A stretch of DNA of 63,609 nt, counting the filler, from Dimorphilus gyrociliatus (taxonomy: Eukaryota > Animalia > Annelida): the NCBI GenBank assembly GCA_904063045.1. It is 5 parts of 5 records of this genome, joined end to end, with 100 filler letters (N's around TTAATTAATTAA, not from the genome) between each part and the next. Parts side by side here need not be neighbours in the genome. Positions count along the whole stretch, not along the records: positions 8,064 to 23,158 come from CAJFCJ010000234.1; 4 more parts are not named here. One strand, 5' to 3'. A program made the position numbers and the translations under genes. The stretch's first letter is position 1; every line of letters starts with the position of its first letter. The notes under the pieces were generated by a model. The model was given only the letters and a program-made list of their open reading frames with translations. It was not told the origin of the DNA and did not search any database. Shown piece after piece: positions 8,064-23,158 of this stretch.

Positions 8064-8198
8064 GATATATTTTACCGATCTGAAACTTATAAATTTGAAG
8101 ACAGAATAAAGAACTTACTGGAAAAATGCTTCAAAATTAAAGAGGATCGTTCAAACTTTGATGAAATTGTTGATTTTTTTTGCTCCGTGACTATTTGA
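8064..8198 (+). CDS. C-terminal end of a probable protein kinase domain, truncated by the contig start
   Basis: Open frame to TGA: ...IKNLLEKCFKIKEDRSNFDEIVDFF resembles subdomain XI (C...RP.F.EI). Confidence 0.45.
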   Translation, partial: DIFYRSETYKFEDRIKNLLEKCFKIKEDRSNFDEIVDFFCSVTI

Positions 8199-8481
8199 AT
8201 ACACTTAAACGCAACTGACTAATTAAGATTAAGACAAAGGCCATTTTGGCTATTAGCAACCTCTAATTTGAAAAAATGGTATTGTGAAAATATTTCACTA
8301 ACCTAATTCATTTTAATATTTTTTACTTTTTATTGACAGCCTATAATTACTGTCTAATACATAAACAATCGTTTCGGAATAAGAACCATATTATATTGCA
8401 TAGGAATAAAGTGAATAAATCTGTTTTTTAGTTTTGAATAAACTGGTGTTTATTATGAAAGAATTAATTTCTTCAGCCCGA

Positions 8482-9762
8482 TTATAAACTTTTTCCTTTG
8501 TAGACACTTTCACTTACTTCTTTGAGCTCTAAACAGGAATAGATAACAGTAAAGAAACTAAAGTCATGGCAACAGAAATGACGACTGGAATAATGTATTG
8601 GTTCGACTAAGCAGAATTGTTTCCTGTTGCACATTAAAGATACATTTCTAGTTGATTTTAATGATTCGCATTGACTTATCTCGTTAGCTGATAAGATACT
8701 CTCTAAATGTTCCTTACTACAACTTATCCAATCATCTTCGCTGTTTCCATAAAATACATGTTCAATATGAATTATTGACGCGACTGGACATTTTAAACTA
8801 GCAACTTGATGTTTACAAACAATTAGTGGAATGTAATCTAGAAAGAGAGAAACGAAAAGTTAAAAAACCATTTTTTAGACAAAAAAAAACACTTACAATT
8901 CATAGAACTAGTTTGAAAAGGTGCTGTATAATTCATTGTCTTCATTGTTGCAGTTGTTGCAGTTGTTGCAGTTGTTGATTCTATTTGACCAAATTCACTA
9001 CAAATATATTTTACTTCCAAATATTTAAAAATTCCAATACATGGATCACCAAAGATATAATTTTTTGCTCTTATGCTACATTTCTCTCTACTATTACATA
9101 ATTGACCTACTTTTAAGTAGGAATATGATGAATTGCAATTATTAAAGGTAAGTCTTTTCCATAGTCCACGTTTACACGTCTGATAATCATTTGGATATCT
9201 TCCATACAAAACTGATCTAACCTCAATAAATTGTCCAATTGAACAAGCCAAATTAAGTGTTTTATGTTCGCAAACAATTTTCCTTTTTAGGCCTACCGGT
9301 TTCGTCTTGCATTCATAATTAACTGATAAATATTTATTTATGCCAAAACAAGGATCTCCGAAGACTTTATTCATAGCTCCAATTGAACAAAATCTTCTAC
9401 CATTGCATGACGCTGTAGCTATCTTATCAGAATTGTTTGCTTTACAATCTCCGCTTAAAACCCGTTTGTAAAGCGGAGAATTGGTTGAAAGTTTCTGATT
9501 ACAAGTCTTGAAATTTCCTTTCAATCTACCATAAAAGGCGGTTTGTATTGAAATTTCCTCATAAATAGGACATTGAATATTTAATGTACTATGTTCACAA
9601 ACTGTTTTTGAGTGTTTAGAAGCAGCTTTTATAGAAAAAAAAATGATGGAAAAAAAGTTATAAAACTTTTATAAAAATAACTAAAACAAATATAAAAATC
9701 ATCTTACCAGAAAGTTGAATTTCAAATGAAAGGAAGAAAAGAATTACAGACAAAAAGAACAT
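8482..9762 (-). CDS. Secreted rhamnose/galactose-binding (SUEL) lectin, three tandem domains with a Thr-rich linker, 3 exons
   Basis: Signal exon MFFLSVILFFLSFEIQLS; two canonical SUEL domains (YGR...C; FGDPC.G..KYL.V.Y.C); TTATTATTAT linker; GT-AG introns; divergent third domain; TAA at 8482-8484. Confidence 0.9.
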
Positions 9763-9895
9763 CTTTGTAAAAAATACCATAATTGAATAAAGAAAGAATG
9801 AATGCGGGCAGAGTATTAGCAGGATACTCTTACTGATTTTCTTCATTTATATACTTTTGGCTTCCATTCCTAATGACGAGATAATTGAATTGGGT

Positions 9896-9975
9896 TGAAA
9901 CCATACCCGAGTGAAACCAGACCAAAATGAAACCTTACCCAAGTGAAACTGTACCTAAGTGAAATCGTACCCATA
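9896..9975. repeat. 16-bp minisatellite, 5 units (tgaaacc.tacccaag)
   Basis: tgaaaccatacccgag / tgaaaccagaccaaaa / tgaaaccttacccaag / tgaaactgtacctaag / tgaaatcgtacccata. Confidence 0.8.
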
Positions 9976-10339
9976 ATATTCATTTTAAATGTAACATTTT
10001 AAACTTTTCTTTTACAATGAATGTTGTTCCCTCAAGTCTCTTGGCTGCTCTGGAAAGTTTATAGAGGGGAGGTGAGGACTGGAGAGATAGGAGAAATGCG
10101 ATGGTTTCACATTTTCTGCCAGCTGATATCATTTGCTCAAACATTTTACAGACAACAAAAGAAAAATTTGCAGATTTGCTGGAATATTTTCAGACTAGTT
10201 GAATTATGAACTCCATTTATGGTCAGATGGTTTACTTAAAAAGTCAAACTGAAGGTAGATACAATAATAACCTTAATAATATTGTATAAATGATAATTCG
10301 AGAACCGTTTCTTAATTATAAAAATGAAGATCTACTCAA

Positions 10340-10560
10340 TTGATAGCATAAAGATTTGAATTAGGGTATTGCATGGAAAATTTGGGTGCTTTTTACTAAT
10401 AAAGCAATAAAAAGTTTTAGAAAAAATGAGACTTTCTCCAACAAAAGAATGGGGAATGGTATGATTTCTTTCGTGGAAGGATCATATTCCCAATTCGTAA
10501 TGTCTCCTGTAAGGTAATAGCCTTTGGTGGACGTGCCTTGAAAAAAAGTAGCAAAACACT
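10340..10560 (+). pseudogene. dnaG: Bacterial DNA primase internal fragment, frameshifted
   Basis: Manual translation: FELGY...AFTNKAI...LEKM.L..QQKNGEWYDFFRGRIIFPIRNVSCKVIAFGGRALKK, the DnaG catalytic-core N-terminal motif (DRFRGRIIFPI...VIAFGGR). Confidence 0.85.
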
Positions 10561-10706
10561 TTATGTCACTGCAAACTACTGTTGTAAATCTCAGTTGTAA
10601 TTAACATAATTATTCGAATAATAGACCTGAAAGAACCTCAATACATCTCTTGGAAGGTTCTTCAAATATCGCCACAGGACATTCTATTTGAAATTAATAA
10701 TTAGCC

Positions 10707-11050
10707 GACATTGAAAACTTTTTAAAACGTTTAAAGAAAGTAGGAAATGTATTAGATATAAATGAATTAAACTAAAAATATCATCTAGAAAGTTGAACGA
10801 TAAGTGAAATTGTACAACACTGTGTCAATAGCCACATGAATTCCTTTATTCCACTTAAATTGCTTTTAATGTAATCCCAGCATTCATCCATATTATGAAA
10901 TATTGTTGGGTAGAATTAGCTGATTTTGTGGAAACCAAAATATAAGATCAAGACAATGCAAAAACAGCTTTTCATCCAGAGCAAGATTGGATGAATCAGT
11001 ATGCATTTGCTACCATTGTAACATATCATCTTGCACACACTTTAAACAAG
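10707..11050 (+). pseudogene. Bacterial YfiT/BstA-like (DinB superfamily) bacillithiol transferase relic
   Basis: DIENFLKRLKK...ELN*KYHLES*TISEIVQHCVNSHMNSFIPLKLLL...IHPYYE..WVELAD...KTAFHPE...HCN.HLAH matches WTI.QVVHHCADSHMNSFIRFKL and HC.HHLAH. Several stops and frameshifts. Confidence 0.8.
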
Positions 11051-11118
11051 CCAACAGAGTACAAAAGGTCCCTTTAATTAAATCTGTTATAAGACTTCTA
11101 TTCGTATTTAACAAGATC

Positions 11119-11759
11119 TTATTGATCTGCTAGTTCATTTATGGATCTTGATTGGAAAAACTTTAAATCATTCCCCTTTTCGGCTATGTTTAAGAAGGAC
11201 TTCCCAATATTTTCGGTGGTTGTTATATAATTTGGAGCGAGGCATTTTAACAGTGGGTAAAGTACTTTTACAACAGGTTCTGCAGCTCCATAAGTTCTAG
11301 AAGTAATATCTCCTATTGGCTTTATAACTGCTAAACGAAAAACATATCCATTTTCCCCAGATCGAAGAATGAAATTTTCAATTTTACCCCTCACATTTTT
11401 CCAATAAGATCACTACCCTCAGCCGAAATATATAAAAATCTCAGATCCGGATTCTGTTCCCATAGCAAATCAGCAAACAATTTGGTAAGATCAAATGTCA
11501 TTTTATGATAATAATCATCTGCCGCACCAAGAGCTGAAATACCAATTGAATAAAAGCAAGCATCATAGCCCTTCAACTGTTCTTTAATGGAATCCAATTG
11601 AAACATATCTTCCAATAAAATCTCCTTCACTTTGGGATGCTCAAAACCGATGCTTTTTCGGTTTATTATTAAAACTTCTCCTACTCTACTGTCTTTGACG
11701 CATTGCAACAATGCACCTTTTCCCATCAAGCCGGATGATCCTGTAATCACAACTTTCAT
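11119..11759 (-). pseudogene. Bacterial NAD(P)-binding epimerase/dehydratase-like (atypical SDR) gene split by one frameshifting deletion
   Basis: ORFs 11391..11759 and 11119..11394 are consecutive halves (VVITGSSGLMG, GYDACFYSIG, MTFDLT, GKIEN, GYVFR); intronless; the expected W-A-R-V-K segment is deleted at the junction. Confidence 0.88.
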
Positions 11760-11778
11760 ATCGTTTTTTTTTATTTAC

Positions 11779-11786
11779 CAAAGCTA
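11779..11786 (-). promoter_or_regulatory. Bacteroidota-type -7 promoter motif TAnnTTTG (TAGCTTTG) with an A-rich, SD-less leader
   Basis: Minus strand reads TAGCTTTG-gtaaataaaaaaaaacgat-ATG. No convincing -33 element. Confidence 0.4.
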
Positions 11787-13242
11787 AGTAGTAGACTTGA
11801 AGTAAATCTTTTGATTGTCAGAAAAGTTCTTGTGAGTACTATAACTTCTACAACTGTTGTGATAAAATAATAGCATAAATACCATTTCACATATATTCAT
11901 CACCTCTATTCTAATATAGATAGATAAGCGGTATTGACCTACTTTATCCTAGTGCAGTGAGTGTACAATCAGTGGCAAAATGGTTTATTGATTTATAAAC
12001 AAATATTGTTATTTTTTATCAGCAAATCTACAATATTGTAAAAAAAATGGAGAAAATCTGATAAGATATCAGGAAAAATGAATTTTTTTCACTATATTAA
12101 ATGCATAAAAATGTAAACATTTCAATTTTCACCTTCTAAGAAAATCAAAATGGCTGCCAATATGGAAATGGGTTTAAATATTTACTAATTGTATTAATAT
12201 ATTGATTATCTCGAAGGAGACGATCGATAAATATTTTATAAAAACTCAATACACAAATATCAAATGAATAACTTACGTTTTTGTAGGATTATTCAACAAA
12301 CGAAGATATTGTTGATCAAAATATAGCAGACGGGAATCGCTACGTTATATACTAGTGCCATCTATAGTCTTAGGGTTAGGGTTTCTCCAATCGAAGACAG
12401 ACTGACAAGGGTGAGTTAAAAAAAAAAGGAAAATGAGGCAAAGTTCAACTGTAGGGATAATTAAATTTTGTCAATAGATTTGAGATAGCTCTACCCAAAT
12501 ATGAAGAAAGTTAGCCCTTACATGACGAATGCTACATATAGGCCTATATCAAATGTAGAAAAAAAAGACTGGTAATAAAGTAATTGTCTTGAAAATTGTT
12601 GAGCAAAGAAGGTAACACATTTGGTAAAATATCCAAAGTTAAATAAATTTCCAAAAACCCCTAACTCTTCAGCCCTTTTTTATCATTCTACTTTCATTTT
12701 CTGATTTGTCAAATTTTTCGTGTTGTACTATCTCATTTGACTGGAAAAGACGAGTTAATTTGTTAATCTTTTACCAGGTTTTGTATTGTAAAATTATAGG
12801 CTAAATATAAGATTCTACATAACCAAATCGTGTTGACAACAACAGCGAGTTGTTTATTTACAAACAACACAATGTAACGCAGACTTGTTCTTGTTTACAC
12901 CACTGTTACATAACATGACAGCCCTTGATCCTGATAATGATACAATAGATTAGGGTAAGGCAAAGCTGCAGGTTTTGCTTGCTCTTCCATTCCAAAGACA
13001 CAGAGACGCATTCTACATTGCCAGAGTCATTTTTAAAGAAAGATAATATGATTCTCAAAGACAAGTGTCAATGTCTGATTTCTTGGTCCAACAGGATTCT
13101 AACTGTTTCTTTATATCTTTAAACCAAGGGGCGAAAAGGCTTTTATAGCATCTTTGATTTCATATGACATAAGAAATAAGATATAAGAAGAAGGAAGAAT
13201 GTTTTTTTATTAATTTTTTTATCCCATTTGTTTGTAAGACAT

Positions 13243-13872
13243 TTAATGTTTAGAATATGAAGATAATGTAGATTTATTTGCGAATGATGAATAAAATACT
13301 TGTCTGAATTTCTTGCCTTGATTACGAGGTTGACAAAGTACCATTGCGGACCATTTATCTTTAGGATTACTAATTATTATAATATCTTTATACATTATAG
13401 TGAAAATTGAATAGTAGGCGAACGTTACAAGAGCAGATAGGGAGAGGGCAACAACAGTCCGCCTCTTAGACGCCATAGTCTTTGCCCTTGTTGGGAAAAG
13501 GATGAATAAACTTCTATCAATAGTCATTGCGCAAAGGACAATTACCCAGAATTGATGAGTTGATTTTTCCATAAAATTCCTTCCAATACAAAGTAGATAG
13601 AAAATTATAGTTTTGTTTTGAATTACGGCTGGTTCAATTGTATAAAACATATTTAAAAAATACCAATTTAACAATGAAATTATATCAACAACTGCTAAAA
13701 CTCTCAAATATATTGAAGTTGTTGTCCTATTCATTGTAGTCTTGCTGAAAATCTTATAACTAATAACATTACCAAACATACCAATTATAAACACTATTGT
13801 TCCAATTACTTTGACTCCAATATACCAATTTAAAGTGCTTGGAGGCAATTGAAATGAGCTTGAGTTGTTCAT
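13243..13872 (-). pseudogene. Class A peptide-type GPCR, TM1-TM4 only
   Basis: GMFGN (TM1), YLRVLAVVD (TM2), TIDRS (DRY-like). No TM5-7 frame found downstream in this contig. Confidence 0.7.
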
Positions 13873-14351
13873 TCTATTCTGTCTGATTCTAGCATATACT
13901 TCATCATTATATTCTTGAGAATTCTATTTTTAGATTCAATAAGGGAGAAAAATAAAGATAAAAAGAAAATGCTTTATAGAATTAGGTTTCTTAACAGACA
14001 GTTGCCATGGTGAAATATACAGATCAGTTTCATTTATCCCTCATATTACAGTAACTAGTCAACTTGACAGATTGAAATATATACATAAAAAGCATAAAAG
14101 AAACACTCCCTATTTCGTTTTATCTCAATTCTAAATTTAATCAAAAACAACACAGTCTTTTCGCTAAGTAGATAGACAAACTGACAAAGAACGCATATAG
14201 GCTTAAAACTTTGTCTCTTAGTTAAAATTTAATTCTTGTTTCAAGCGTTCACATAAATTTTCTATAAAAGGTTATTGAATTTTTTGTCAATTACAAAACT
14301 ATAAAAAGGAATTCTTTAGCTTCTTGTTGATCATTAATAAAAAAGAAAATC

Positions 14352-15719
14352 ATGGATAAAGTGCAAATTTTTTTCTGTTTAAATCTTTTAATGCAATATT
14401 CTGTCGCGAAAAATTTAAATCACGTAAATATCGCTCTGAATCAGTCAACTTACCAATCAACTACAAGATCTAATAGATGTAGTTATTTGGCAGTTAATGG
14501 TAATTTTAATCCAGTCTTTTCCAGTGGTTCAAGATGTTCTCACACTGAAGAAGAAGATAGACCTTGGTTTATAATCCAATTCAAAAAAGCCTATATTATT
14601 CAAACAATACGGATTTTGAACAGATCTGGATGGACCTCTGCAAGATTGACTAAATTATTTATCGGAACTAAACTATCAAGAGATATTTCAGAAATAGACA
14701 CAAGAAACTATGAAATGTTTTCTGTAGTCAACTCACCAATAGCTGCTTCATCATCTGCAACATTAAGCTACTTAAATAGACCACACTACTCAACTACACT
14801 GTTAATTTATAAAAACGTTAAAGGTTTATTAACAATTTGCCAACTAGAGATATGGAATTTGAATAATATTGCTAAACATAAACCAGCAACAACAGTCGGC
14901 AATGATGATGGAATGCCTTTAAAAGCTGTTGATGGTCAGAGTAGTTCAAAATATTCTGTTGATGGGATTTTTTGTACACAATCTGATGCAGTTAATTTTC
15001 CATGGTGGCAAGTTGATTTAGAAAAGGATTCTGTTGTGTTTGCTGTTACAATCGTTGCACGATTTTCTTCTGATTTCCAAATAAAAAATCTTCGCATTGG
15101 TCTTTCACTTAACAACACTGACCCTGCAAGTGGAGTCCAAGCAGAATGTGGCTACCATGATGGAAACTTACCAATCTATTTTACTATGAGATGTCCACAA
15201 TGGACTATTGGTCGCTACTTGTCCACCGTAATGAATTCACCGTCGAGTACTCGAATACTAGCCCTGTGCGAAGTTGATGTTTTTGGTTATAATTTAGATA
15301 AAGAGTTTAAACTATATGCAATTTTTCAAAATGGAACCAATTATTCCTATAGCAATTTTTCAACAACAAAAGATTGCCATGGCAACACAAAATTTTCAAT
15401 TGATTTAGCAGATTATTCTATAAATCATCTCACATTTAGAATGAATGGAGTAGGGATTATAAGTGATTGTAATAAGAAAAATGTTTTTGTAGCATCATTA
15501 TTCCAGAGCAAAACTGGTAAAAGTCTAAATGAATGTAGACTGTCTAATAGTGTTGATGGCTATTTTACAGGTAGAGATATGTATGATACTTGTACATTTC
15601 ATTGTACTTGTGGTATGAATAATTGTCAATCAGCTATAGTATTCCTTTCATCAAACCAACAGATTATATATAGAGAACTGTTTACCTTTATTGACTTGGA
15701 CACAGTTCCACTTGTGTAG
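14352..15719 (+). CDS. Secreted protein with two tandem FTP domains plus a C-terminal Cys-rich domain, single exon
   Basis: 455-aa ORF, signal peptide, NIALNQSTYQS..LAVNGN..CSHT..PWF; second domain NIAKHKPA..AVDG..PWWQVDL..LALCEVDVFG. Confidence 0.9.
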   Translation: MDKVQIFFCLNLLMQYSVAKNLNHVNIALNQSTYQSTTRSNRCSYLAVNGNFNPVFSSGSRCSHTEEEDRPWFIIQFKKAYIIQTIRILNRSGWTSARLTKLFIGTKLSRDISEIDTRNYEMFSVVNSPIAASSSATLSYLNRPHYSTTLLIYKNVKGLLTICQLEIWNLNNIAKHKPATTVGNDDGMPLKAVDGQSSSKYSVDGIFCTQSDAVNFPWWQVDLEKDSVVFAVTIVARFSSDFQIKNLRIGLSLNNTDPASGVQAECGYHDGNLPIYFTMRCPQWTIGRYLSTVMNSPSSTRILALCEVDVFGYNLDKEFKLYAIFQNGTNYSYSNFSTTKDCHGNTKFSIDLADYSINHLTFRMNGVGIISDCNKKNVFVASLFQSKTGKSLNECRLSNSVDGYFTGRDMYDTCTFHCTCGMNNCQSAIVFLSSNQQIIYRELFTFIDLDTVPLV

Positions 15720-16578
15720 TTTGTTAAAACGAATTCAACTCTACAGCAGAATAAAATGATTTCAAAGATTAAAAATATTCAGAATACTTAAATATTTTCT
15801 ATAGATTTTATAGTTTCTATTTCTAATCAGCTATAAATAATGTAAACAAGGTATTATTTCTAGTTCAATTGATCAGTTTTTGCAAAATGTTTCTGTCTCT
15901 TTTATCCAAATAGAATTAATATTTTATTGTCTTTTACTCTTTCAATTTAATTTATAATTTTTATCTTTCATTTATCATAAAAGTAATTTATGAAAATGTT
16001 TCAATCATTCATATTTGTCCTTTCCAATCATTTACTAATTCATGAAAGTACTCACACAAAATGGAACCTTTAAAGTTCGTCCAGAGTCGTCTTAATAAAT
16101 GTAATTTTTGTAGAAATCAATTAATTTGAACACTAGTTGTAGTTGCAAATATTTAACTATCCTCTTTGGAAGAAACACATTTTCGTACTGATAAAATGAG
16201 GAAAAAACTGATGATTGCTTGCTTTTTTGTTTACTTTTTCCTTAATGTTTTTTCATTACCATTGACTGAAAATGGTTTAACATCAATTTTGAAACAAATG
16301 GAAAAGTGAGAGGAATTGGAAAATACATGCTAATTTTCATAACAACATTAAGGAAGTAGAACAAAATTTAACATTACAATCAAAAATCTAACTTTGAATT
16401 TTCTTAGTAATCTTAAATTCTCTGGCTGCTGGCCCTTTGTACCATATGCTCAATGATGGTAATACCTTCTTTTTGATTCTTTTCTCGCTATAAACATACT
16501 TTAAACTCATAACTGATCAACAAAATGCCTGTATTTGGTTTAAAGAATATGTATTGAGTAAATGAGTTTCTAGTTCCA

Positions 16579-16848
16579 AACAAGTAAGTTTAAACAACCA
16601 GTTAAGGGTTAAAGAACTGAACTGACAAGCTGGGGAAATGCATTTCCTTTTATACATTTCCCAAAGCTTGGGTTCAAATGGTCAACGGATTACAAAGTTG
16701 AAATCTGACAGTCTCATAATTCTTATGTAACAAAAATATGAAAGACTTGTTATATCACACGTATAAAATATAGTCCTAAGATTAGGGCCATATGTCAAAC
16801 ATGTGCCACAGTAAACAGGCCTCATCAGCATCTGGTGTTAGGGAAGCA
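16579..16848. repeat. About 265-bp repeat, left copy of an inverted pair
   Basis: Reverse complement of 20876-21141, about 90% identical by eye. Confidence 0.9.
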
Positions 16849-17683
16849 AGGCCAGATAAAAAAATATTGATTAAAATTATGAAAAATATTTTACTAATAA
16901 CTTTCCCAAATATCATCTTTTTCTCAATTTTTTAATATTGTGTGAATATTTCTCTTTATCTATAAAAAATTTAGACAAAAAAAACTATTTTTCTTGGAAA
17001 AAACATTTTTATTATTATTTTAAATTTGCCCTATCAAACTTCAGGGTTTACCAAAATTTACATAAAAGTGAAAAACACTTCCTTATTTTAAATATCCTTC
17101 TGTAAAGAAAAATGTAAGATATTATTGAGAACACTCTTTTTATAATTTCCTGGAAAAAATATTTAACAGTTTCCATAAACTTTCTACAGAGGTCAAGGTC
17201 ATAATAAAAGTTAATCAGGGCATTTTTAACTACAACTCCTCGCATAGTAAGCCTAACATTAAATGCCAAATCTGATTGGCTATTATTATATAATATCTTT
17301 TCTTTTTTTTTGTTTGTACTTTGATATTTAATATGTTGGTGTGAGAAATCTCTTCTTTTCAACACTTTTGTATATTTGGTTGAGTTATCCATTTGTTAGA
17401 GAATTTTGAATAAATCTTTAGAGAGAGAGTGTGTGTGTATGTAATGGATATTATCTGGCTATGCACATTTGTGACCAGGAAGATTGCGGTAGAAACAAAT
17501 CTCTTACTGATGATAATGTAATAAAATGAGTTTAATTAGAAAAATAAATTTGAAGCGAATGGTTAGTTGGTTGATTACAAATATTTTATTTATGATTTTT
17601 AGTCTAATGTAAGCCTAGTGGTCAATGCAGTTATGAGAAATTAAACTGCAACCGTCTATCAGAACTAAGGTATGAAGAACTTT

Positions 17684-18060
17684 TCTTCATTGTTGGACTT
17701 GATGTATTGTTACATCTTATACAACTATTCAAAAATTTAACTATTATTTTGAAAAGGAAAACAATAAAAACTCAGCAAAGAATTAGCCTGAAGGGGAAAT
17801 GCAAGCAGATGATCATTCAGTCTATTCTATTAATTTTTTTAATCTTGGATAAAATAGTACTTTTTTAATAGTTACTTGTTTTATGGTTATTTCTTTCAAT
17901 GATAGTCAAGAAATTCAATTGAAAATCAAATACAACTGGAATAATCAAGATAATCCAGCCATCTTAAAACACATTTACAGTAAATTACTCAAATTCTTCA
18001 TCGTGATTTACTTCAATGAAAACGTTTCCCTTAGCTTATGAGAAACGTCTATTTCTACTC
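17684..18060. repeat. Copy 1 of a local segmental duplication (copy 2 at 19561-20520)
   Basis: Colinear matches such as aaaaatttaactattattttgaaaaggaaaacaataaaaa and caatacaactggaataatcaagataatcca, with different internal deletions. Confidence 0.9.
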
Positions 18061-18695
18061 CATATATCCTGCAAGTGATGTAAATTTTTACGAGAACAAT
18101 ATCACAATTTCCCGACAGTATCAAAGATAATATCATATTTTTCACCATTTCCTTTAAAGTTTTTTTTGTATAATCTATTACACAATCAGCTCCCATCGAT
18201 TTAACCATTTCAAGGTTTGCAGTACTACAAACTCCTGTAACGGCAGCACCGTGATACTTGGCCATTTGGACAGTAGCAACACCAACACTTCAGATGCTCT
18301 ATAGACAAGGACTCTTTGATCTCTTTGAATTTTGGCTCTTTCTAAAAATTGAATAGCTGTCTCTGTACCAAAAAGACTTGCAACAGATTCTTTCTATGAC
18401 AAGTTGTTTAGTTTCTGAACAATGAAACCAGTTTCGGGTAAGCAAATTAATTGAGTGTATGTTCCAAAAGCTGATTCAGGTGAACCAAACACTTGATCAC
18501 CTTTCTTGAATAATTTAACTTTTTTTCCAACTATATCAACTTCTCCAGCAAAACACAAACCCCAAATAAGATTTTTTGGTCTAAACAACCCCAATGAAAG
18601 TCTTGCTGGTAACCATAATGAAGCTGGAATCTCTTTATAACCCCAAAGTTTACAATCTCCAGAAGTTGTCATTGTAGCATGTAATTTTTATATTC
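18010..18695 (-). pseudogene. Bacterial NAD(P)-dependent alcohol dehydrogenase/quinone oxidoreductase (MDR superfamily), copy 1 (N-terminal and middle)
   Basis: [104 protein letters not shown]; stops, frameshifts and deletions; intronless. Confidence 0.88.
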
Positions 18696-18789
18696 ATGAT
18701 TTATTTTTATTCAGAAATGTGTCATAAGTATGATTCTATATTTTATATGGCATTTATAAATATTCAGTTATTTCAATCAGATTCTAAGC

Positions 18790-19260
18790 TGTCAGTTTGC
18801 AGAATTTTTTTCTTTATACTGATCACCAAAATTGGTACAAACCTTTGTACAGATGAAACTAAATTCAAGTACTATCAAATGCTTTATGGCCCTTATGGAC
18901 ATGGATTTTGAAATAATTTTTATACCAGGAAGAACTAACAGAGGAGACTTGGTATCTAGAATTGGAGAAACTGATGAAGCAATTGATTTTTGTAATTACC
19001 TAAAAGACAGCTCCTCAGTTACTTGTAATCCCACTATCAACCTTAACCAAACTACTTGAACAAATTCATGAATATACCTATGCAAAGAATTGCTATGGAC
19101 ATAATGGGACCTTTGACAAGACATGGTTCTAACAAAAATATACTTGTCATTATAGACCACATGTCAAGATTCACCAATCTATTCCCTCTAAAAACACAAA
19201 CAGCTGAAGAAATTTCCAAACATTTGCTTTTCAACTATTTTCCAATAGTGTTCTTCTAAT
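18790..19260 (+). mobile_element. Ty3/Gypsy pol relic (RNase H end fused to integrase core start)
   Basis: FFLYTDHQ, MDFEIIFIPGRTN..DLVSR, then PMQRIAMDIMGPL..ILVIIDHMSRF..FPLKTQTAEEI. Confidence 0.8.
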
Positions 19261-20332
19261 GTTTTAATAAATACAATAATGTTATTCATATAATTAATAC
19301 AAAAATTTTCCAATCTTTGGATATGTAATCTTCTTCCAATGTAACAATTTTGACATACATCTTTTCCATGTTCTTTGTTCCTTTGTTAATTCTAAAATCA
19401 CAAGGGACTACAATTGTATACACAATACTACTCAACACAACAAGCATTAATCAGACATACTTCCTCTGCATATACTGATGCTAAATTTATTAACTAAAGC
19501 AATTAATTATAATTAATTGACTAGAATACAAAAATGATCAAATACACAATCTAGATGTTTTCTTCATTTTTGGACATGATGTATTGTTACCTCTTGTACA
19601 ACTCTCCAAAAATTTAACTATTATTTTGAAAAGGAAAACAATAAAAATCATATTTAGAACTTTTCTTTTTCTTAAAATGTTACTTTTGGTTTTGTGAACA
19701 TTGAAATCCATTGGAAGTTCTTCTCAAACATTGATAAATTCCAATACAAAATCTCAGCAAAGAATTAGTTTGAAGGGGAAATGGAAGTAGATGATCATTC
19801 AGTCCATTCTATTAATTTCTTAATGGATAAAATTTCAATAGTTACTTGTTTTATGGTTATTTCCTTCAGTGATAGTCAAGAAATTCAATTGAAAATTACA
19901 GAAATATACATCTAACTACTTTGCATTAAATTTTCCTTTTTTTGATAAAAGCAAGATAAAAGAAAGAACAATTTACAATTTCCTTAACTATAGAAATGAA
20001 TTAACTGACAATATTTATTTTGAAAATAACTTTAAAAATATATTAACTTATTGTTGTGAAGAGAAAATCATTTCTAGCTCAGTAAAAGTTGAATGCTTCA
20101 TTTCACAGATATTGGAAAACAGGAAATCACCATTATTTTTAATACAATAGAGATTGAATTGTTAATATTTTTCATCAGTTTAATACAATTTTCAACCTAC
20201 CATATACATGGAAATGATTATATTTTGTTCAACAACATAGAACTAACAGCTTGCGGTATTCAACATCAATACAACTGGAATAATCAAGATAATCCAACTG
20301 TCTTAAAATACATTTATAGTAAATTATTCAAA

Positions 20333-20660
20333 TTATTCATCATAATTTACTTCAATGACAATGTTTCCCTTTTTTCGACCTGTTTCCACGTAGATATGAG
20401 CATCAGGTATCTCCTCCAATAAATAAGTTCAGTCAATAACTGGTGTTATTGCTCCTGATTCAGCCAGTTCCCTTAGCTTGTGAAAACGTCTATTTCTACT
20501 CCACATATCCTGCAAATGTTGTTGTGACCACCAGTTATGGATGGCCATAATTGGTGAAGTATTCTTGTTAATGAGAATAGAGCTATTAGATAATAACCTG
20601 TTGGATTTTTACAAGAAGAATATAAAAATTTGCCAACAGTATCAAAGATAATATCATCAT
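20333..20660 (-). pseudogene. Bacterial MDR alcohol dehydrogenase, copy 2 (C-terminal third with native stop)
   Basis: [65 protein letters not shown]. Confidence 0.88.
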
Positions 20661-20815
20661 TTAGAAAGACTTCTAGTTCATAGGAATTAGAATGGTGCAA
20701 CTATAGAAATACTTCTATTTTGTAGCAATTGTACTGATGCAACTTTAGAAAGACTTCTATTTCGTAGAGTTAGCTTTTGGTATTTTTGAAAGAACTCTAT
20801 TTCGTTGGAAATAGA
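20661..20815. repeat. About 42-bp minisatellite, 3-4 degenerate units
   Basis: Recurring tagaaagacttcta / tagaaatacttcta / gaaagaactcta at about 42-nt spacing. Confidence 0.7.
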
Positions 20816-20875
20816 CTCTTTGACTGTAACAGATGGTGGCTACTTGGCAATTAACAAAGGAACAAAGAACATGTC

Positions 20876-21141
20876 AAACACCAGATGCTGATGAGGCAGG
20901 CCTGCTTGCTGTGGCACATGTTTGTCATGTGGCCTTAATCTCAGGATTATATTTTATATGTGTGATATAACAAGTCTTTCATATTTTTGTTACATAAGAA
21001 TTACGAGACTGTCAGATTTCAACTTTGTGATCCTTTGACCACTTGAACCCAAGCTTTGGGAAATGTATAAAAGGAAATGCATTTCCCCAGCTTGTCAGCT
21101 CAGCTTTTTAACTGTTAACTGGTTGATTGAACTTACTTGTT
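20876..21141. repeat. About 265-bp repeat, right copy of the inverted pair
   Basis: Reverse complement of 16579-16848. Confidence 0.9.
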
Positions 21142-21230
21142 GTACACTTATGAACTATAGTTTATAGATATTTTATAAATGATACATACTATATGGTAGA
21201 AGTGTTGAAGTAGATGTTGCCTCTAGGAAT
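21141..21230. repeat. Dispersed repeat module shared with 33449-33540
   Basis: tgtacacttatgaactatagt(t)tatagatatt.tataaatgatac occurs at both sites, in different contigs. Confidence 0.8.
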
Positions 21231-22090
21231 GATTGGAAAGGACTAATACTCTTCTGAAGAATCAGAAATTCCTACAATTACAATACAATAAAGTACAATT
21301 GCCATTGCAAAAATTTTCTGCACAATAATAGCAAATTCCCACTGCTTTAATATACGCAAGTCATGTGACTTTAGTGAAAATTCTTTTCTATTACTCTCAA
21401 TAGGTTTGTCTACAACCTTCTGTCCCCCTTTTTTTGATTCTATGTATTGAACAGGATTCGAATGCAGAATGGTGTCCATAATTAGAAATTTGCAAAACTA
21501 TTTTGTTTAATTTGTTTTCCATTTGTTTTTGATTAAATGTTGGTAATTTTTTCTTCTTTCCAAAATTTACCTTTACAAATATAAACCTTAGCGAATAGTT
21601 TTGAAGAAATTTTAATTGAACAAACTGAAATTTTCTACAAATGTTCACAAAAAGATTGTAAAGTACAATCTTTTTTGAAGATGGTAGAAATACGATGAGC
21701 CAGTCAGAAAATATTTGCAATGCTGATTAGACTTAGAAGTTTTTCAATTATGCTTATGTGTTAAAAGATTCTTTCATAGTCAAATTTAAAAGAAGGATGA
21801 ATAAATACAGCTATTTCAAGATACTATTGCAATTCAGCAGCCTACTGCAAAAAAAATACAAAAACTGAGTACTAAAGAAATGTAGAGATGATGTAATTCC
21901 TGACATTTTTAAAAAAATGTTAAAACAATGGAGAAAAAACAACTCAGGGAATCTAGAACTAAATAATTGATTTGTTTCTTTAAATTGTAATTGTTTTAGA
22001 GTGGATTCATTTTAGTTAGTGCTGGAGATAATAAGTTTATTTTAAAAGAGACAAAAACAAGATTGATTCAGAGAAATAGAGAAAACTAAT

Positions 22091-22880
22091 TTACTGCTTA
22101 ACATACGAATAACGTAGTTCTGAAAAGACCATTTTCTTAATTTTGCTGAACAATCTACAACCATTTGTTTGCAAAGAAACACCAAGGCTTCCACTAGTTC
22201 TACGGCAAAGACCTACACAGCTTTCATGATCGTCATTAAATAAAAATCTCAGGGTGGTACCCTCAATGTTATCATTGAGCATAAGTTACAAAATTGAATA
22301 TTTTTCTTACTGAAATTTGTAATTAAATTGTTAAAAAATAGCACAAAAAAACAGTTAATACCTTTTGTATCTTTTATGTAGAAAAGATTGTCTGATCTTG
22401 TTCTATATTGATGATGAGGCAGCAACTTGTCTTTCAACCAGCACATCTTTCTTCTAAAGTTAATGGAGAAGGCTATACATTTTTGGTTGCTTTTACACCA
22501 ATCATGACATTTGGATATTGTAGCATCAGTGAAAATCTTTATATCATTTCCAGCTGATGCTTTTTGTTGCGTCACAAAATATTGTGGAAGAATATCTGAA
22601 ATTATTCAATTTTTAAATAATGTTTTAATTTTTTTTAATTTAAAAAAACATCAAAAATACTTACATTCCTTCTTTCTAATGTACAATGTTGATCCAATTG
22701 CTGGTGTGATACATGATTCTGGAATCGTTTCATAAAGATAGCATCTTTTATTATGATAGGCATAGCCAGCAAGTATATAGGATTTTGAATATAAAACCAT
22801 ACATTGAGGAATCTACTGACAATAACGTGTTGTAATTGAGTTTGAACAAATCTTATTTTTCATAATAGTCATATCAAAGT
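22091..22880 (-). pseudogene. Multi-exon PAN/apple-domain protein, at least 3 domains, at least one in-frame stop
   Basis: GNDI..ISKCHDWCKSNQKCIAFS..CWLK; NIEG..ESCVGLC..CRLFS; upstream exon RYCQ*IPQC..CYLYE with GT-AG junctions. Confidence 0.6.
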
Positions 22881-23158
22881 GAATATCAAGCAGAATGGAT
22901 GCTAGTAAATTGGTATGAGTTTGTCTCTACTATATATGTTTAAGAACTTAAGGTCTGATTCAATCTGACACACTCAGAAATTATCTATTTTTTTTCATAT
23001 ATGGATTTAATGTAATTAAATTTTCGTCCTTTATTCATATTTCTGCATATTGTACAACTTTCGTTATATTTGATGCTTATACTATGCTACTATAGTGTAT
23101 AAAAATGAGCTATCAATCTATTCTTCAAGGTTTATAGAATGCCATACATAAATATACA

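Follow-up and report, generated by a model that had tools for sequence, protein, structure and literature searches.

Reports of bacterial genes in animal genomes are frequently contested as contamination, and the locus described here raises two questions: whether a block of bacterial genes standing between animal genes belongs to the genome in which it was assembled, and what has become of these genes since their arrival. The locus lies in assembly GCA_904063045.1 of the annelid Dimorphilus gyrociliatus, within an analysed stretch of 63,609 nucleotides made of five joined parts (hereafter the window), of which positions 8064-23158 come from CAJFCJ010000234.1. An initial annotation had placed in 10340-11790 a fragment of the primase gene dnaG, a YfiT-like gene and a convergent epimerase-like gene, and had read them as bacterial DNA that was integrated and then decayed. 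All three are present there, far above chance. Sequence comparison identifies the block as bacterial in origin; it is integrated in the animal genome, dnaG and yfiT are dead remnants, and intact paralogues of the epimerase-like gene exist at other loci. Very probably, a bacterial fragment entered the germ line of D. gyrociliatus, one gene was domesticated and duplicated, dnaG and yfiT decayed, and the copy in the window was recently broken.

Transfer of genes from bacteria to animals followed by domestication is a known class, with cases in rotifers, insects and nematodes; the present case is a new example and leaves the general understanding of such transfers unchanged. It carries its own proof in the fossils of donor neighbours, the even coverage, the splicing of host type and the selection seen on the paralogues. 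For annelids, in which few cases are documented, it provides a clean example, and does so in a genome known for its conservative compaction.

Bacterial Ancestry of the Block

The epimerase-like gene matches 78 bacterial loci in a prokaryote genome collection (GTDB) with E-values down to 9e-42, the best bacterial identity being 53-55% over the first half of the protein and 30-39% over the second. In an exhaustive HMMER search, 1.84 billion representative proteins yielded 1650 relatives, a single one of which exceeds 54% identity, the D. gyrociliatus protein P0008 described below; the next best long matches reach about 50%. Above roughly 55% identity only D. gyrociliatus proteins are found, and below it every named relative is bacterial, accompanied by many unnamed metagenome proteins. 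A word-index search with the 122-aa piece of the window gene returned two distant matches only, and its length range left out the 219-aa paralogue. The relatives are bacterial proteins of the type annotated as “NAD-dependent epimerase/dehydratase family / YbjT (DUF2867)”. Neither the pieces of the window gene nor P0008 matches any Pfam family, and bacterial relatives do so only at the threshold of PF01370 (21-22.5 bits against 20.9), so that membership in the short-chain dehydrogenase/reductase (SDR) group (PF01370 or PF13460, of the “YbjT DUF2867” type) rests on homology to proteins so annotated.

The annelid copies group on the tree as a single clade with a support of 100, on a long branch among bacterial sequences, and 59 of the 72 bacterial loci that were placed belong to Bacteroidota (families such as Cyclobacteriaceae, Flavobacteriaceae, Saprospiraceae and Chitinophagaceae). 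In a plasmid collection, the YfiT piece matches genes annotated as YfiT family bacillithiol transferase, two of them in Cytophagales, where its best matches lie, and the best match of DnaG is from Parabacteroides. Bacteroidota are thus the most likely donor group, as the initial annotation had suspected from the style of the sequence. Metagenome relatives come no closer than 42%, and neither DnaG nor YfiT was found within 6-10 kb of the homologue at any of 109 bacterial loci (78 from GTDB and 31 from metagenomes).

Integration into the Animal Genome

The block was compared with Logan contigs, not raw reads, of four sequencing runs: X1 is a genomic run, X2 comes from a different study, and X2 to X4 bear the guessed labels “DNA?” or “?”. 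In X1, 95% of the stretch is present, along with a D. gyrociliatus paralogue at like depth, and contigs with k-1 overlaps tile 9095-14000 at depths of 128 (lectin gene on the left), 128, 108 (dnaG and YfiT) and 129 (epimerase-like gene to the receptor gene on the right). The coverage check that had been proposed for this locus therefore shows no step across the block and its flanks. One X1 contig of 2.8 kb leads from inside the epimerase-like gene (11592) past the receptor gene (14000). X2 contains 9766-10360 and 10331-10733, with zero differences in the latter. G+C content is about 30% across 8064-23158, and this AT-rich composition makes no step at the bacterial block.

X2 to X4 cover genic parts only, with joints that are GT-AG on the strand of the gene concerned, and because of this patchy coverage and these joints we take them as RNA libraries; the library type recorded for the three runs seems missing or wrong. 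In X4 a joint removes an intron from the 5′ untranslated region (5′UTR) of the epimerase-like gene, while in X2 and X3 the intron of the neighbouring lectin gene (9626-9707, GT-AG on the minus strand) is removed by a joint at 9625/9708. Spliceosomal introns are absent from bacteria, and their presence is strong evidence of residence and transcription in the animal nucleus. Animal genes stand on both sides of the block, as first annotated, and were identified as a SUEL lectin with its spliced intron, a rhodopsin-type receptor and an F5/8 type C protein. With the even depth (108-129), the bridging contig, the second study and the GT-AG intron, the block is integrated in the animal genome and is not contamination.

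Intact Paralogues under Purifying Selection

P0008 (CAD5126801.1, “unnamed protein product [Dimorphilus gyrociliatus]”, 219 aa) is 87% identical to the window protein over residues 1-117, and its gene stands uninterrupted on a 62-kb contig of the same assembly, GCA_904063045.1 (locus L083). A second “unnamed protein product”, P0158 (235 aa), is 87% identical to P0008 and is encoded on two further contigs of GCA_904063045.1, L084 and L085, which are 99.4% alike and may be haplotigs. The intact paralogues are 84-87% identical, and the three loci are 81-85% alike to the window with synonymous divergence (dS) of 0.5-0.7; the window and L083 genes share 83.5% of their DNA.

All runs contain “variant” contigs whose 13 differences at 11594-11762 are exactly those of L083, and the 28 extra letters at the upstream joint of the variant are the end of L083 exon 1 fused to the start of exon 2 across a GTAATT...TTTGTAG intron. 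This homologous paralogue intron is spliced in X2 and X3. Since spliced contigs exist for the window copy and for L083, both the intact and the broken copies appear to be spliced.

Substitution rates were estimated by the Nei-Gojobori method. Between window and L083, dS is 0.48 and the non-synonymous rate (dN) 0.087, giving a dN/dS ratio (omega) of 0.18, which divides into 0.115 upstream of the break and 0.29 downstream of it. Omega is 0.09 between L083 and L084 (dS 0.70) and 0.14 between window and L084. These comparisons show purifying selection on the epimerase-like gene in the host, maintained across duplications that are old (omega 0.09-0.18, dS 0.48-0.70). The initial expectation of integration followed by decay thus holds for dnaG and YfiT, and fails for the epimerase-like family, which has intact paralogues, low omega and a spliced 5′UTR intron.

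The order of events can be read in part from the shared features. At L083, too, a YfiT remnant with stops stands convergent to the gene (E 3e-11, residues 68-103 and 125-167), so the transfer is older than the duplications, and since upstream non-coding sequence is common to window and L083 (76%), the capture of the host 5′ exon came before them as well. The break in the window copy is recent, with dN/dS still at 0.29 downstream of the frameshift. No dnaG was found at L083, and neither a dnaG nor a YfiT remnant at L084 and L085. In these last two contigs (L084 4195-11110 and L085 1776-8673) the gene occurs twice in inverted arms of 3.25 kb; between first and second copies there are six deletions of one base and not a single mismatch. 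A palindromic artefact of long-read assembly seems a better account of this than a real duplication, and the second copies were not counted.

The Broken Copy in the Window

In the window, the epimerase-like gene lies convergent to YfiT and opens with an ATG at 11759; frame A encodes residues 1-117 (11759-11409) and frame B residues ~124-220 (11409-11122), followed by a stop at 11119-11121. Its single lesion is a 19-nt deletion at ~11405-11409 relative to the intact L083 paralogue, and the reading frame as it stands stops after 122 aa (11391-11393). The first description, that all the genes carry stops, frameshifts or deletions, is accurate in this sense, with one deletion as the whole of the damage here. 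The letters that bear the deletion are identical in contigs of three runs (X1, X3 and X4), so it is not an assembly error. The frameshift was also considered as an intron and this was ruled out, as the would-be intron codes for residues that have counterparts in the bacterial proteins, and the paralogue differs at this point simply by 19 nt.

The N-terminal motif TGxxGxxG is kept (ITGSSGLMGKG, residues 5-15), and no ATG occurs upstream of 11759 in the 5′UTR exon sequence. G+C at third codon positions (GC3) is 0.29-0.36, near the overall host value of ~0.30. We regard the window copy as a young pseudogene that is still transcribed, the transcription being read from spliced contigs of presumed RNA nature. 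Position 10755, where the X4 contigs of either haplotype stop (an X3 contig stops at 10749), may mark the 3′ end of the transcript from the minus strand. It lies ~360 nt past the stop of the gene and within the antisense of the YfiT remnant, and no AATAAA was seen nearby.

dnaG and YfiT Remnants

The dnaG element is a remnant and not a complete gene. An open piece of 56 codons (10430-10597, plus strand), preceded by four in-frame stops, matches Pfam DNAG_N (PF08275), the N-terminal subdomain of the catalytic core, with an E-value of 2.2e-12 and 47.6 bits (cut-off 26), at model positions 65-107 of 128 only, and positions 187-229 of TIGR01391 with 45.5 bits against a cut-off of 283.6. In tblastn, residues 154-228 of Parabacteroides distasonis DnaG align to 10352-10558 at 43% identity (E 2.6e-11), across four stops and a 7-residue gap. 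The rest of this 705-aa protein found no match in tblastn: the zinc finger, Toprim and helicase-binding C-terminal domains are gone.

For YfiT the homology appears clear, although the family threshold is out of reach for a fragment: the 25-aa piece at 10797-10871 matches NF009807 (YfiT family bacillithiol transferase) with E 0.0036 and 17.1 bits against a cut-off of 160, and its sole match in the PDB is YfiT (1rxq). Residues 28-83 of Chondrinema YfiT align by tblastn to 10701-10868 (E 4e-9) across two in-frame stops, at 10773-10775 and 10794-10796. At least one frameshift follows near 10870, and beyond it weak colinear bits are seen at 10873-10917 (in another frame), 10907-10924 and 10946-10981; as the last of these corresponds to residues 131-142, residues ~104-130 are missing by deletion, and the C-terminal part occupies 10946-11074. 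Pfam gave no match on the YfiT pieces. The gene had been called near full-length; it is indeed present, while only about two thirds of the protein can be traced, and two stops, a frameshift and a deletion leave no open frame of the full ~175 aa. A possible N-terminal continuation lies at ~10620-10700 in another frame, where the first 27 residues were seen by eye only. Both dnaG and YfiT are dead remnants.

A second version of 10736-10942 occurs in X2 and X4 and is absent from X1; it is 92% alike, with 16 differences that are nearly all non-synonymous in the YfiT frame and a new stop at 10878. The fossil region is therefore polymorphic between cultures or strains. Between the haplotypes about 2 synonymous changes stand against 13 non-synonymous ones plus the new stop, and both haplotypes share the two stops given above. 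A further contig, present in X2 and, at depth 41 where the main form has 108, in X1, passes from 10331-10359 directly to 11039. This is an alternative branch between the same anchor words around 10360-11038; its AT..AC ends are not splice-like, and it occurs in a genomic run. Either it is an allele from which dnaG and YfiT have been deleted, or it belongs to a haplotype whose divergence prevents alignment.

Origin and Evolution of the Block

The course of events that we favour would run as follows. A fragment of a bacterial chromosome, with part of dnaG, a gene of the yfiT family and a convergent epimerase-like gene of 220 aa, would have entered the germ line of the D. gyrociliatus lineage. 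The epimerase-like gene alone would have been domesticated: it would have come under a host promoter and acquired, along with a first exon that is non-coding, a spliceosomal intron in its 5′UTR. Duplication would then have carried it to at least two other loci, and the copies there are intact and evolve under purifying selection. The dnaG and yfiT pieces would never have been of use and have decayed by stops, frameshifts and deletions. The window copy has lately lost 19 nt, which shifts the frame after residue 117 and would take away the C-terminal half of the predicted Rossmann-fold enzyme. Since it keeps the largest share of the fragment (dnaG, yfiT and the gene), the window is probably the original insertion site or the locus nearest to it. 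A fuller version, for which we would claim no more than a tentative standing, takes the window as the place where a Bacteroidota fragment of several genes first integrated into the germ line of dinophilids, with the neighbours fossil, the founder just dead yet transcribed and the daughters under selection. If so, the locus would hold a dated, stepwise record of domestication, from the capture of promoter and intron through duplication to the loss of the founder.

Other explanations have to be weighed against this one. The block could come from a bacterium living with the worm and have been wrongly joined to animal DNA, and such an assembly chimera might have passed unnoticed, given that contaminants were removed at the contig level only in the D. 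gyrociliatus genome paper, which mentions horizontal gene transfer only in a reference and does not discuss it for the species (PMC7854359); X1, moreover, may be the very sample behind the assembly of the window. It is scarcely credible, however, in view of the even depth over block and flanks, the tiling and bridging contigs from an independent re-assembly of the reads, and the recurrence of the block in X2. An essential primase cut to 75 residues with stops, a GT-AG intron in the 5′UTR, three divergent loci in the same assembly and a GC3 near that of the host also speak against contamination. If the block is accepted as integrated, dnaG, yfiT and the epimerase-like gene may have arrived by separate transfers, or from separate donors, at one permissive site, which would agree with their not being neighbours in any sampled bacterial genome and with the absence of dnaG from L083. 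We consider this unlikely, because the three pieces lie 20-60 nt apart and no host sequence separates them, yfiT and the epimerase-like gene stand tail to tail ~60 nt apart like convergent bacterial genes, and all three have their best matches in Bacteroidota. The pair formed by YfiT and the epimerase-like gene is also common to two paralogous loci, in keeping with a single continuous fragment that deletions trimmed afterwards; the data do not establish the “mosaic” of the initial annotation. A single contiguous donor fragment is the economical reading, not a demonstrated one, and one single transfer is likewise presumed.

The status of the window copy itself can be argued in a similar way. 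A low omega, such as the 0.115 of its N-terminal part, may speak for a functional 122-aa product or transcript, and it is equally what would be expected if the break were recent. The copy appears to be transcribed and spliced in X4 at a depth similar to or above that of the intact paralogue, and it has no upstream ATG. The 19-nt deletion, on the other hand, takes out a conserved stretch after GSD and shifts the frame, so that the helices and strands predicted from residue 118 onwards are lost in the model, and the intact paralogues make this copy dispensable; a function retained by it is, in our view, very unlikely. As for the favoured history of one transferred fragment and one domesticated gene, several points count against it: the donor phylum depends on a long-branch placement, and dnaG and YfiT were compared with the plasmid collection only; none of the 109 bacterial loci shows a matching gene order that would demonstrate one contiguous donor fragment; the splicing is seen in runs that bear the labels “DNA?” or “?” and are not RNA on record; and the idea of an ancestral site draws on the retention of dnaG only.

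Predicted Enzyme and Comparison with Known Systems

The structure model of P0008 is confident (pLDDT 94, pTM 0.91) and is that of a Rossmann-fold atypical short-chain dehydrogenase, with SDR structures matched at a probability of 1.0. It aligns with CC3/TIP30 (2bka) at a TM-score of 0.78 and with PA4017 (2a35, “possible epimerase”) at 0.66, and an NAD(P)H-dependent oxidoreductase is the best guess for the enzyme. CC3/TIP30 (HTATIP2) and PA4017 are atypical SDRs alike in fold, in the N-terminal TGxxGxxG and in their length of ~210-230 aa. They differ in sharing ~20% identity, and the relatives of the annelid gene are bacterial and not of the animal TIP30 lineage. Two “unnamed protein products” of D. 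gyrociliatus may accordingly be flagged as putative members of a bacterial-derived, TIP30-like family of NAD(P)-binding enzymes.

In 2008, Gladyshev, Meselson and Arkhipova reportedly found bacterial genes in the nuclear DNA of bdelloid rotifers beside host genes and transposons, some intact, expressed and intron-gaining, and others with stops and frameshifts. The present locus resembles that system in having bacterial genes in animal nuclear DNA that are either intact and expressed with introns or broken. It differs in belonging to an annelid with a compact genome and in forming a single small block, without massive subtelomeric accumulation, where the donor neighbours lie fossil beside a domesticated gene. 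Insertions from Wolbachia into the genomes of its insect and nematode hosts are multi-gene fragments in the germ line, most genes of which decay as pseudogenes, and a mostly decayed multi-gene bacterial fragment in the germ line is also what we describe. Here, in contrast, the donor is no known endosymbiont, the relatives, none above 55% identity, being Bacteroidota that live freely or with hosts; moreover, selection has maintained one gene after its domestication and duplication. A compendium of horizontal gene transfers in Metazoa (2026) treats the same class of event, the acquisition of a bacterial enzyme gene by an animal; it excludes pseudogenes by design, and its main text does not contain Dimorphilus (PMC13342648).

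Flanking Genes and Host Context

Coordinates of the block and of the animal genes around it are given in Table 1.

Table 1. Features of the bacterial block and its flanks, in window positions.
Feature	Position	Strand	Evidence or remark
Frameshifted bacterial-type NAD(P)-binding epimerase-like gene (putative atypical SDR, TIP30/PA4017-like predicted fold), 220 aa	11119..11759	-	Sequence comparison
5′UTR part of exon 2	11760..11853	-	X4 contig
5′UTR spliceosomal intron, 423 nt	11854..12276	-	Donor AAAAAC/GTAAGT, acceptor ACAG/TTG; X4 joint 11853/12277, CT..AC on + strand
Non-coding first exon and upstream region, host type	12277..12379	-	Contig shows 12277-12335; 76% to L083 9633-9882
DnaG primase internal remnant, about residues 154-240 of ~650-700	10352..10597	+	Pfam, TIGR01391, tblastn
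YfiT-family (DinB-fold bacillithiol transferase) pseudogene	10701..11074	+	NF009807, PDB, tblastn
SUEL-type lectin, flanking animal gene	8838..9846	-	Signal-peptide exon and intron; Pfam SUEL_Lectin E 1.8e-28, domain 8838-9524
Rhodopsin-family receptor fragment, flanking animal gene	13243..13872	-	Pfam 7tm_1 E 6.7e-7
F5/8 type C protein, animal gene	14352-15719		Pfam scan of window

The F5/8 type C reading frame (455 aa) is 42% identical to a D. gyrociliatus protein, its next named match being from fish at 27%. Together with repeats 80-95% identical to those of a D. gyrociliatus contig and the like depth of both gene copies in X1, this agrees with D. gyrociliatus, or a very close relative, as the host. 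Ten further open pieces in 9873-10206 and 11787-13119 gave no match in Pfam, and thus no more bacterial remnants were seen in the immediate flanks. At 9900-9975, about 400 nt upstream of the dnaG remnant, there are units resembling GTGAAAC..TACC where several X1 and X3 contigs branch into other sequence, and this repeat boundary might be the left edge of the foreign block.

Pfam also recognises in the flanks a PAN domain, part of an integrase and a zinc-type dehydrogenase that is split into pieces. The dehydrogenase (18008-18672, minus strand) is represented by two open pieces that match ADH_N and ADH_zinc_N (zinc-type alcohol dehydrogenase or quinone oxidoreductase) with non-coding stretches between them, and is either a host gene with introns or a further gene in decay. 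Repeats at 16012-16839, 19339-19389 and 20661-21298 are common to another D. gyrociliatus contig (there L083 3801-6605) at 75-95% identity; together with the integrase (rve) fragment at 19056-19259, these dispersed repeats are probably decayed retroelements.

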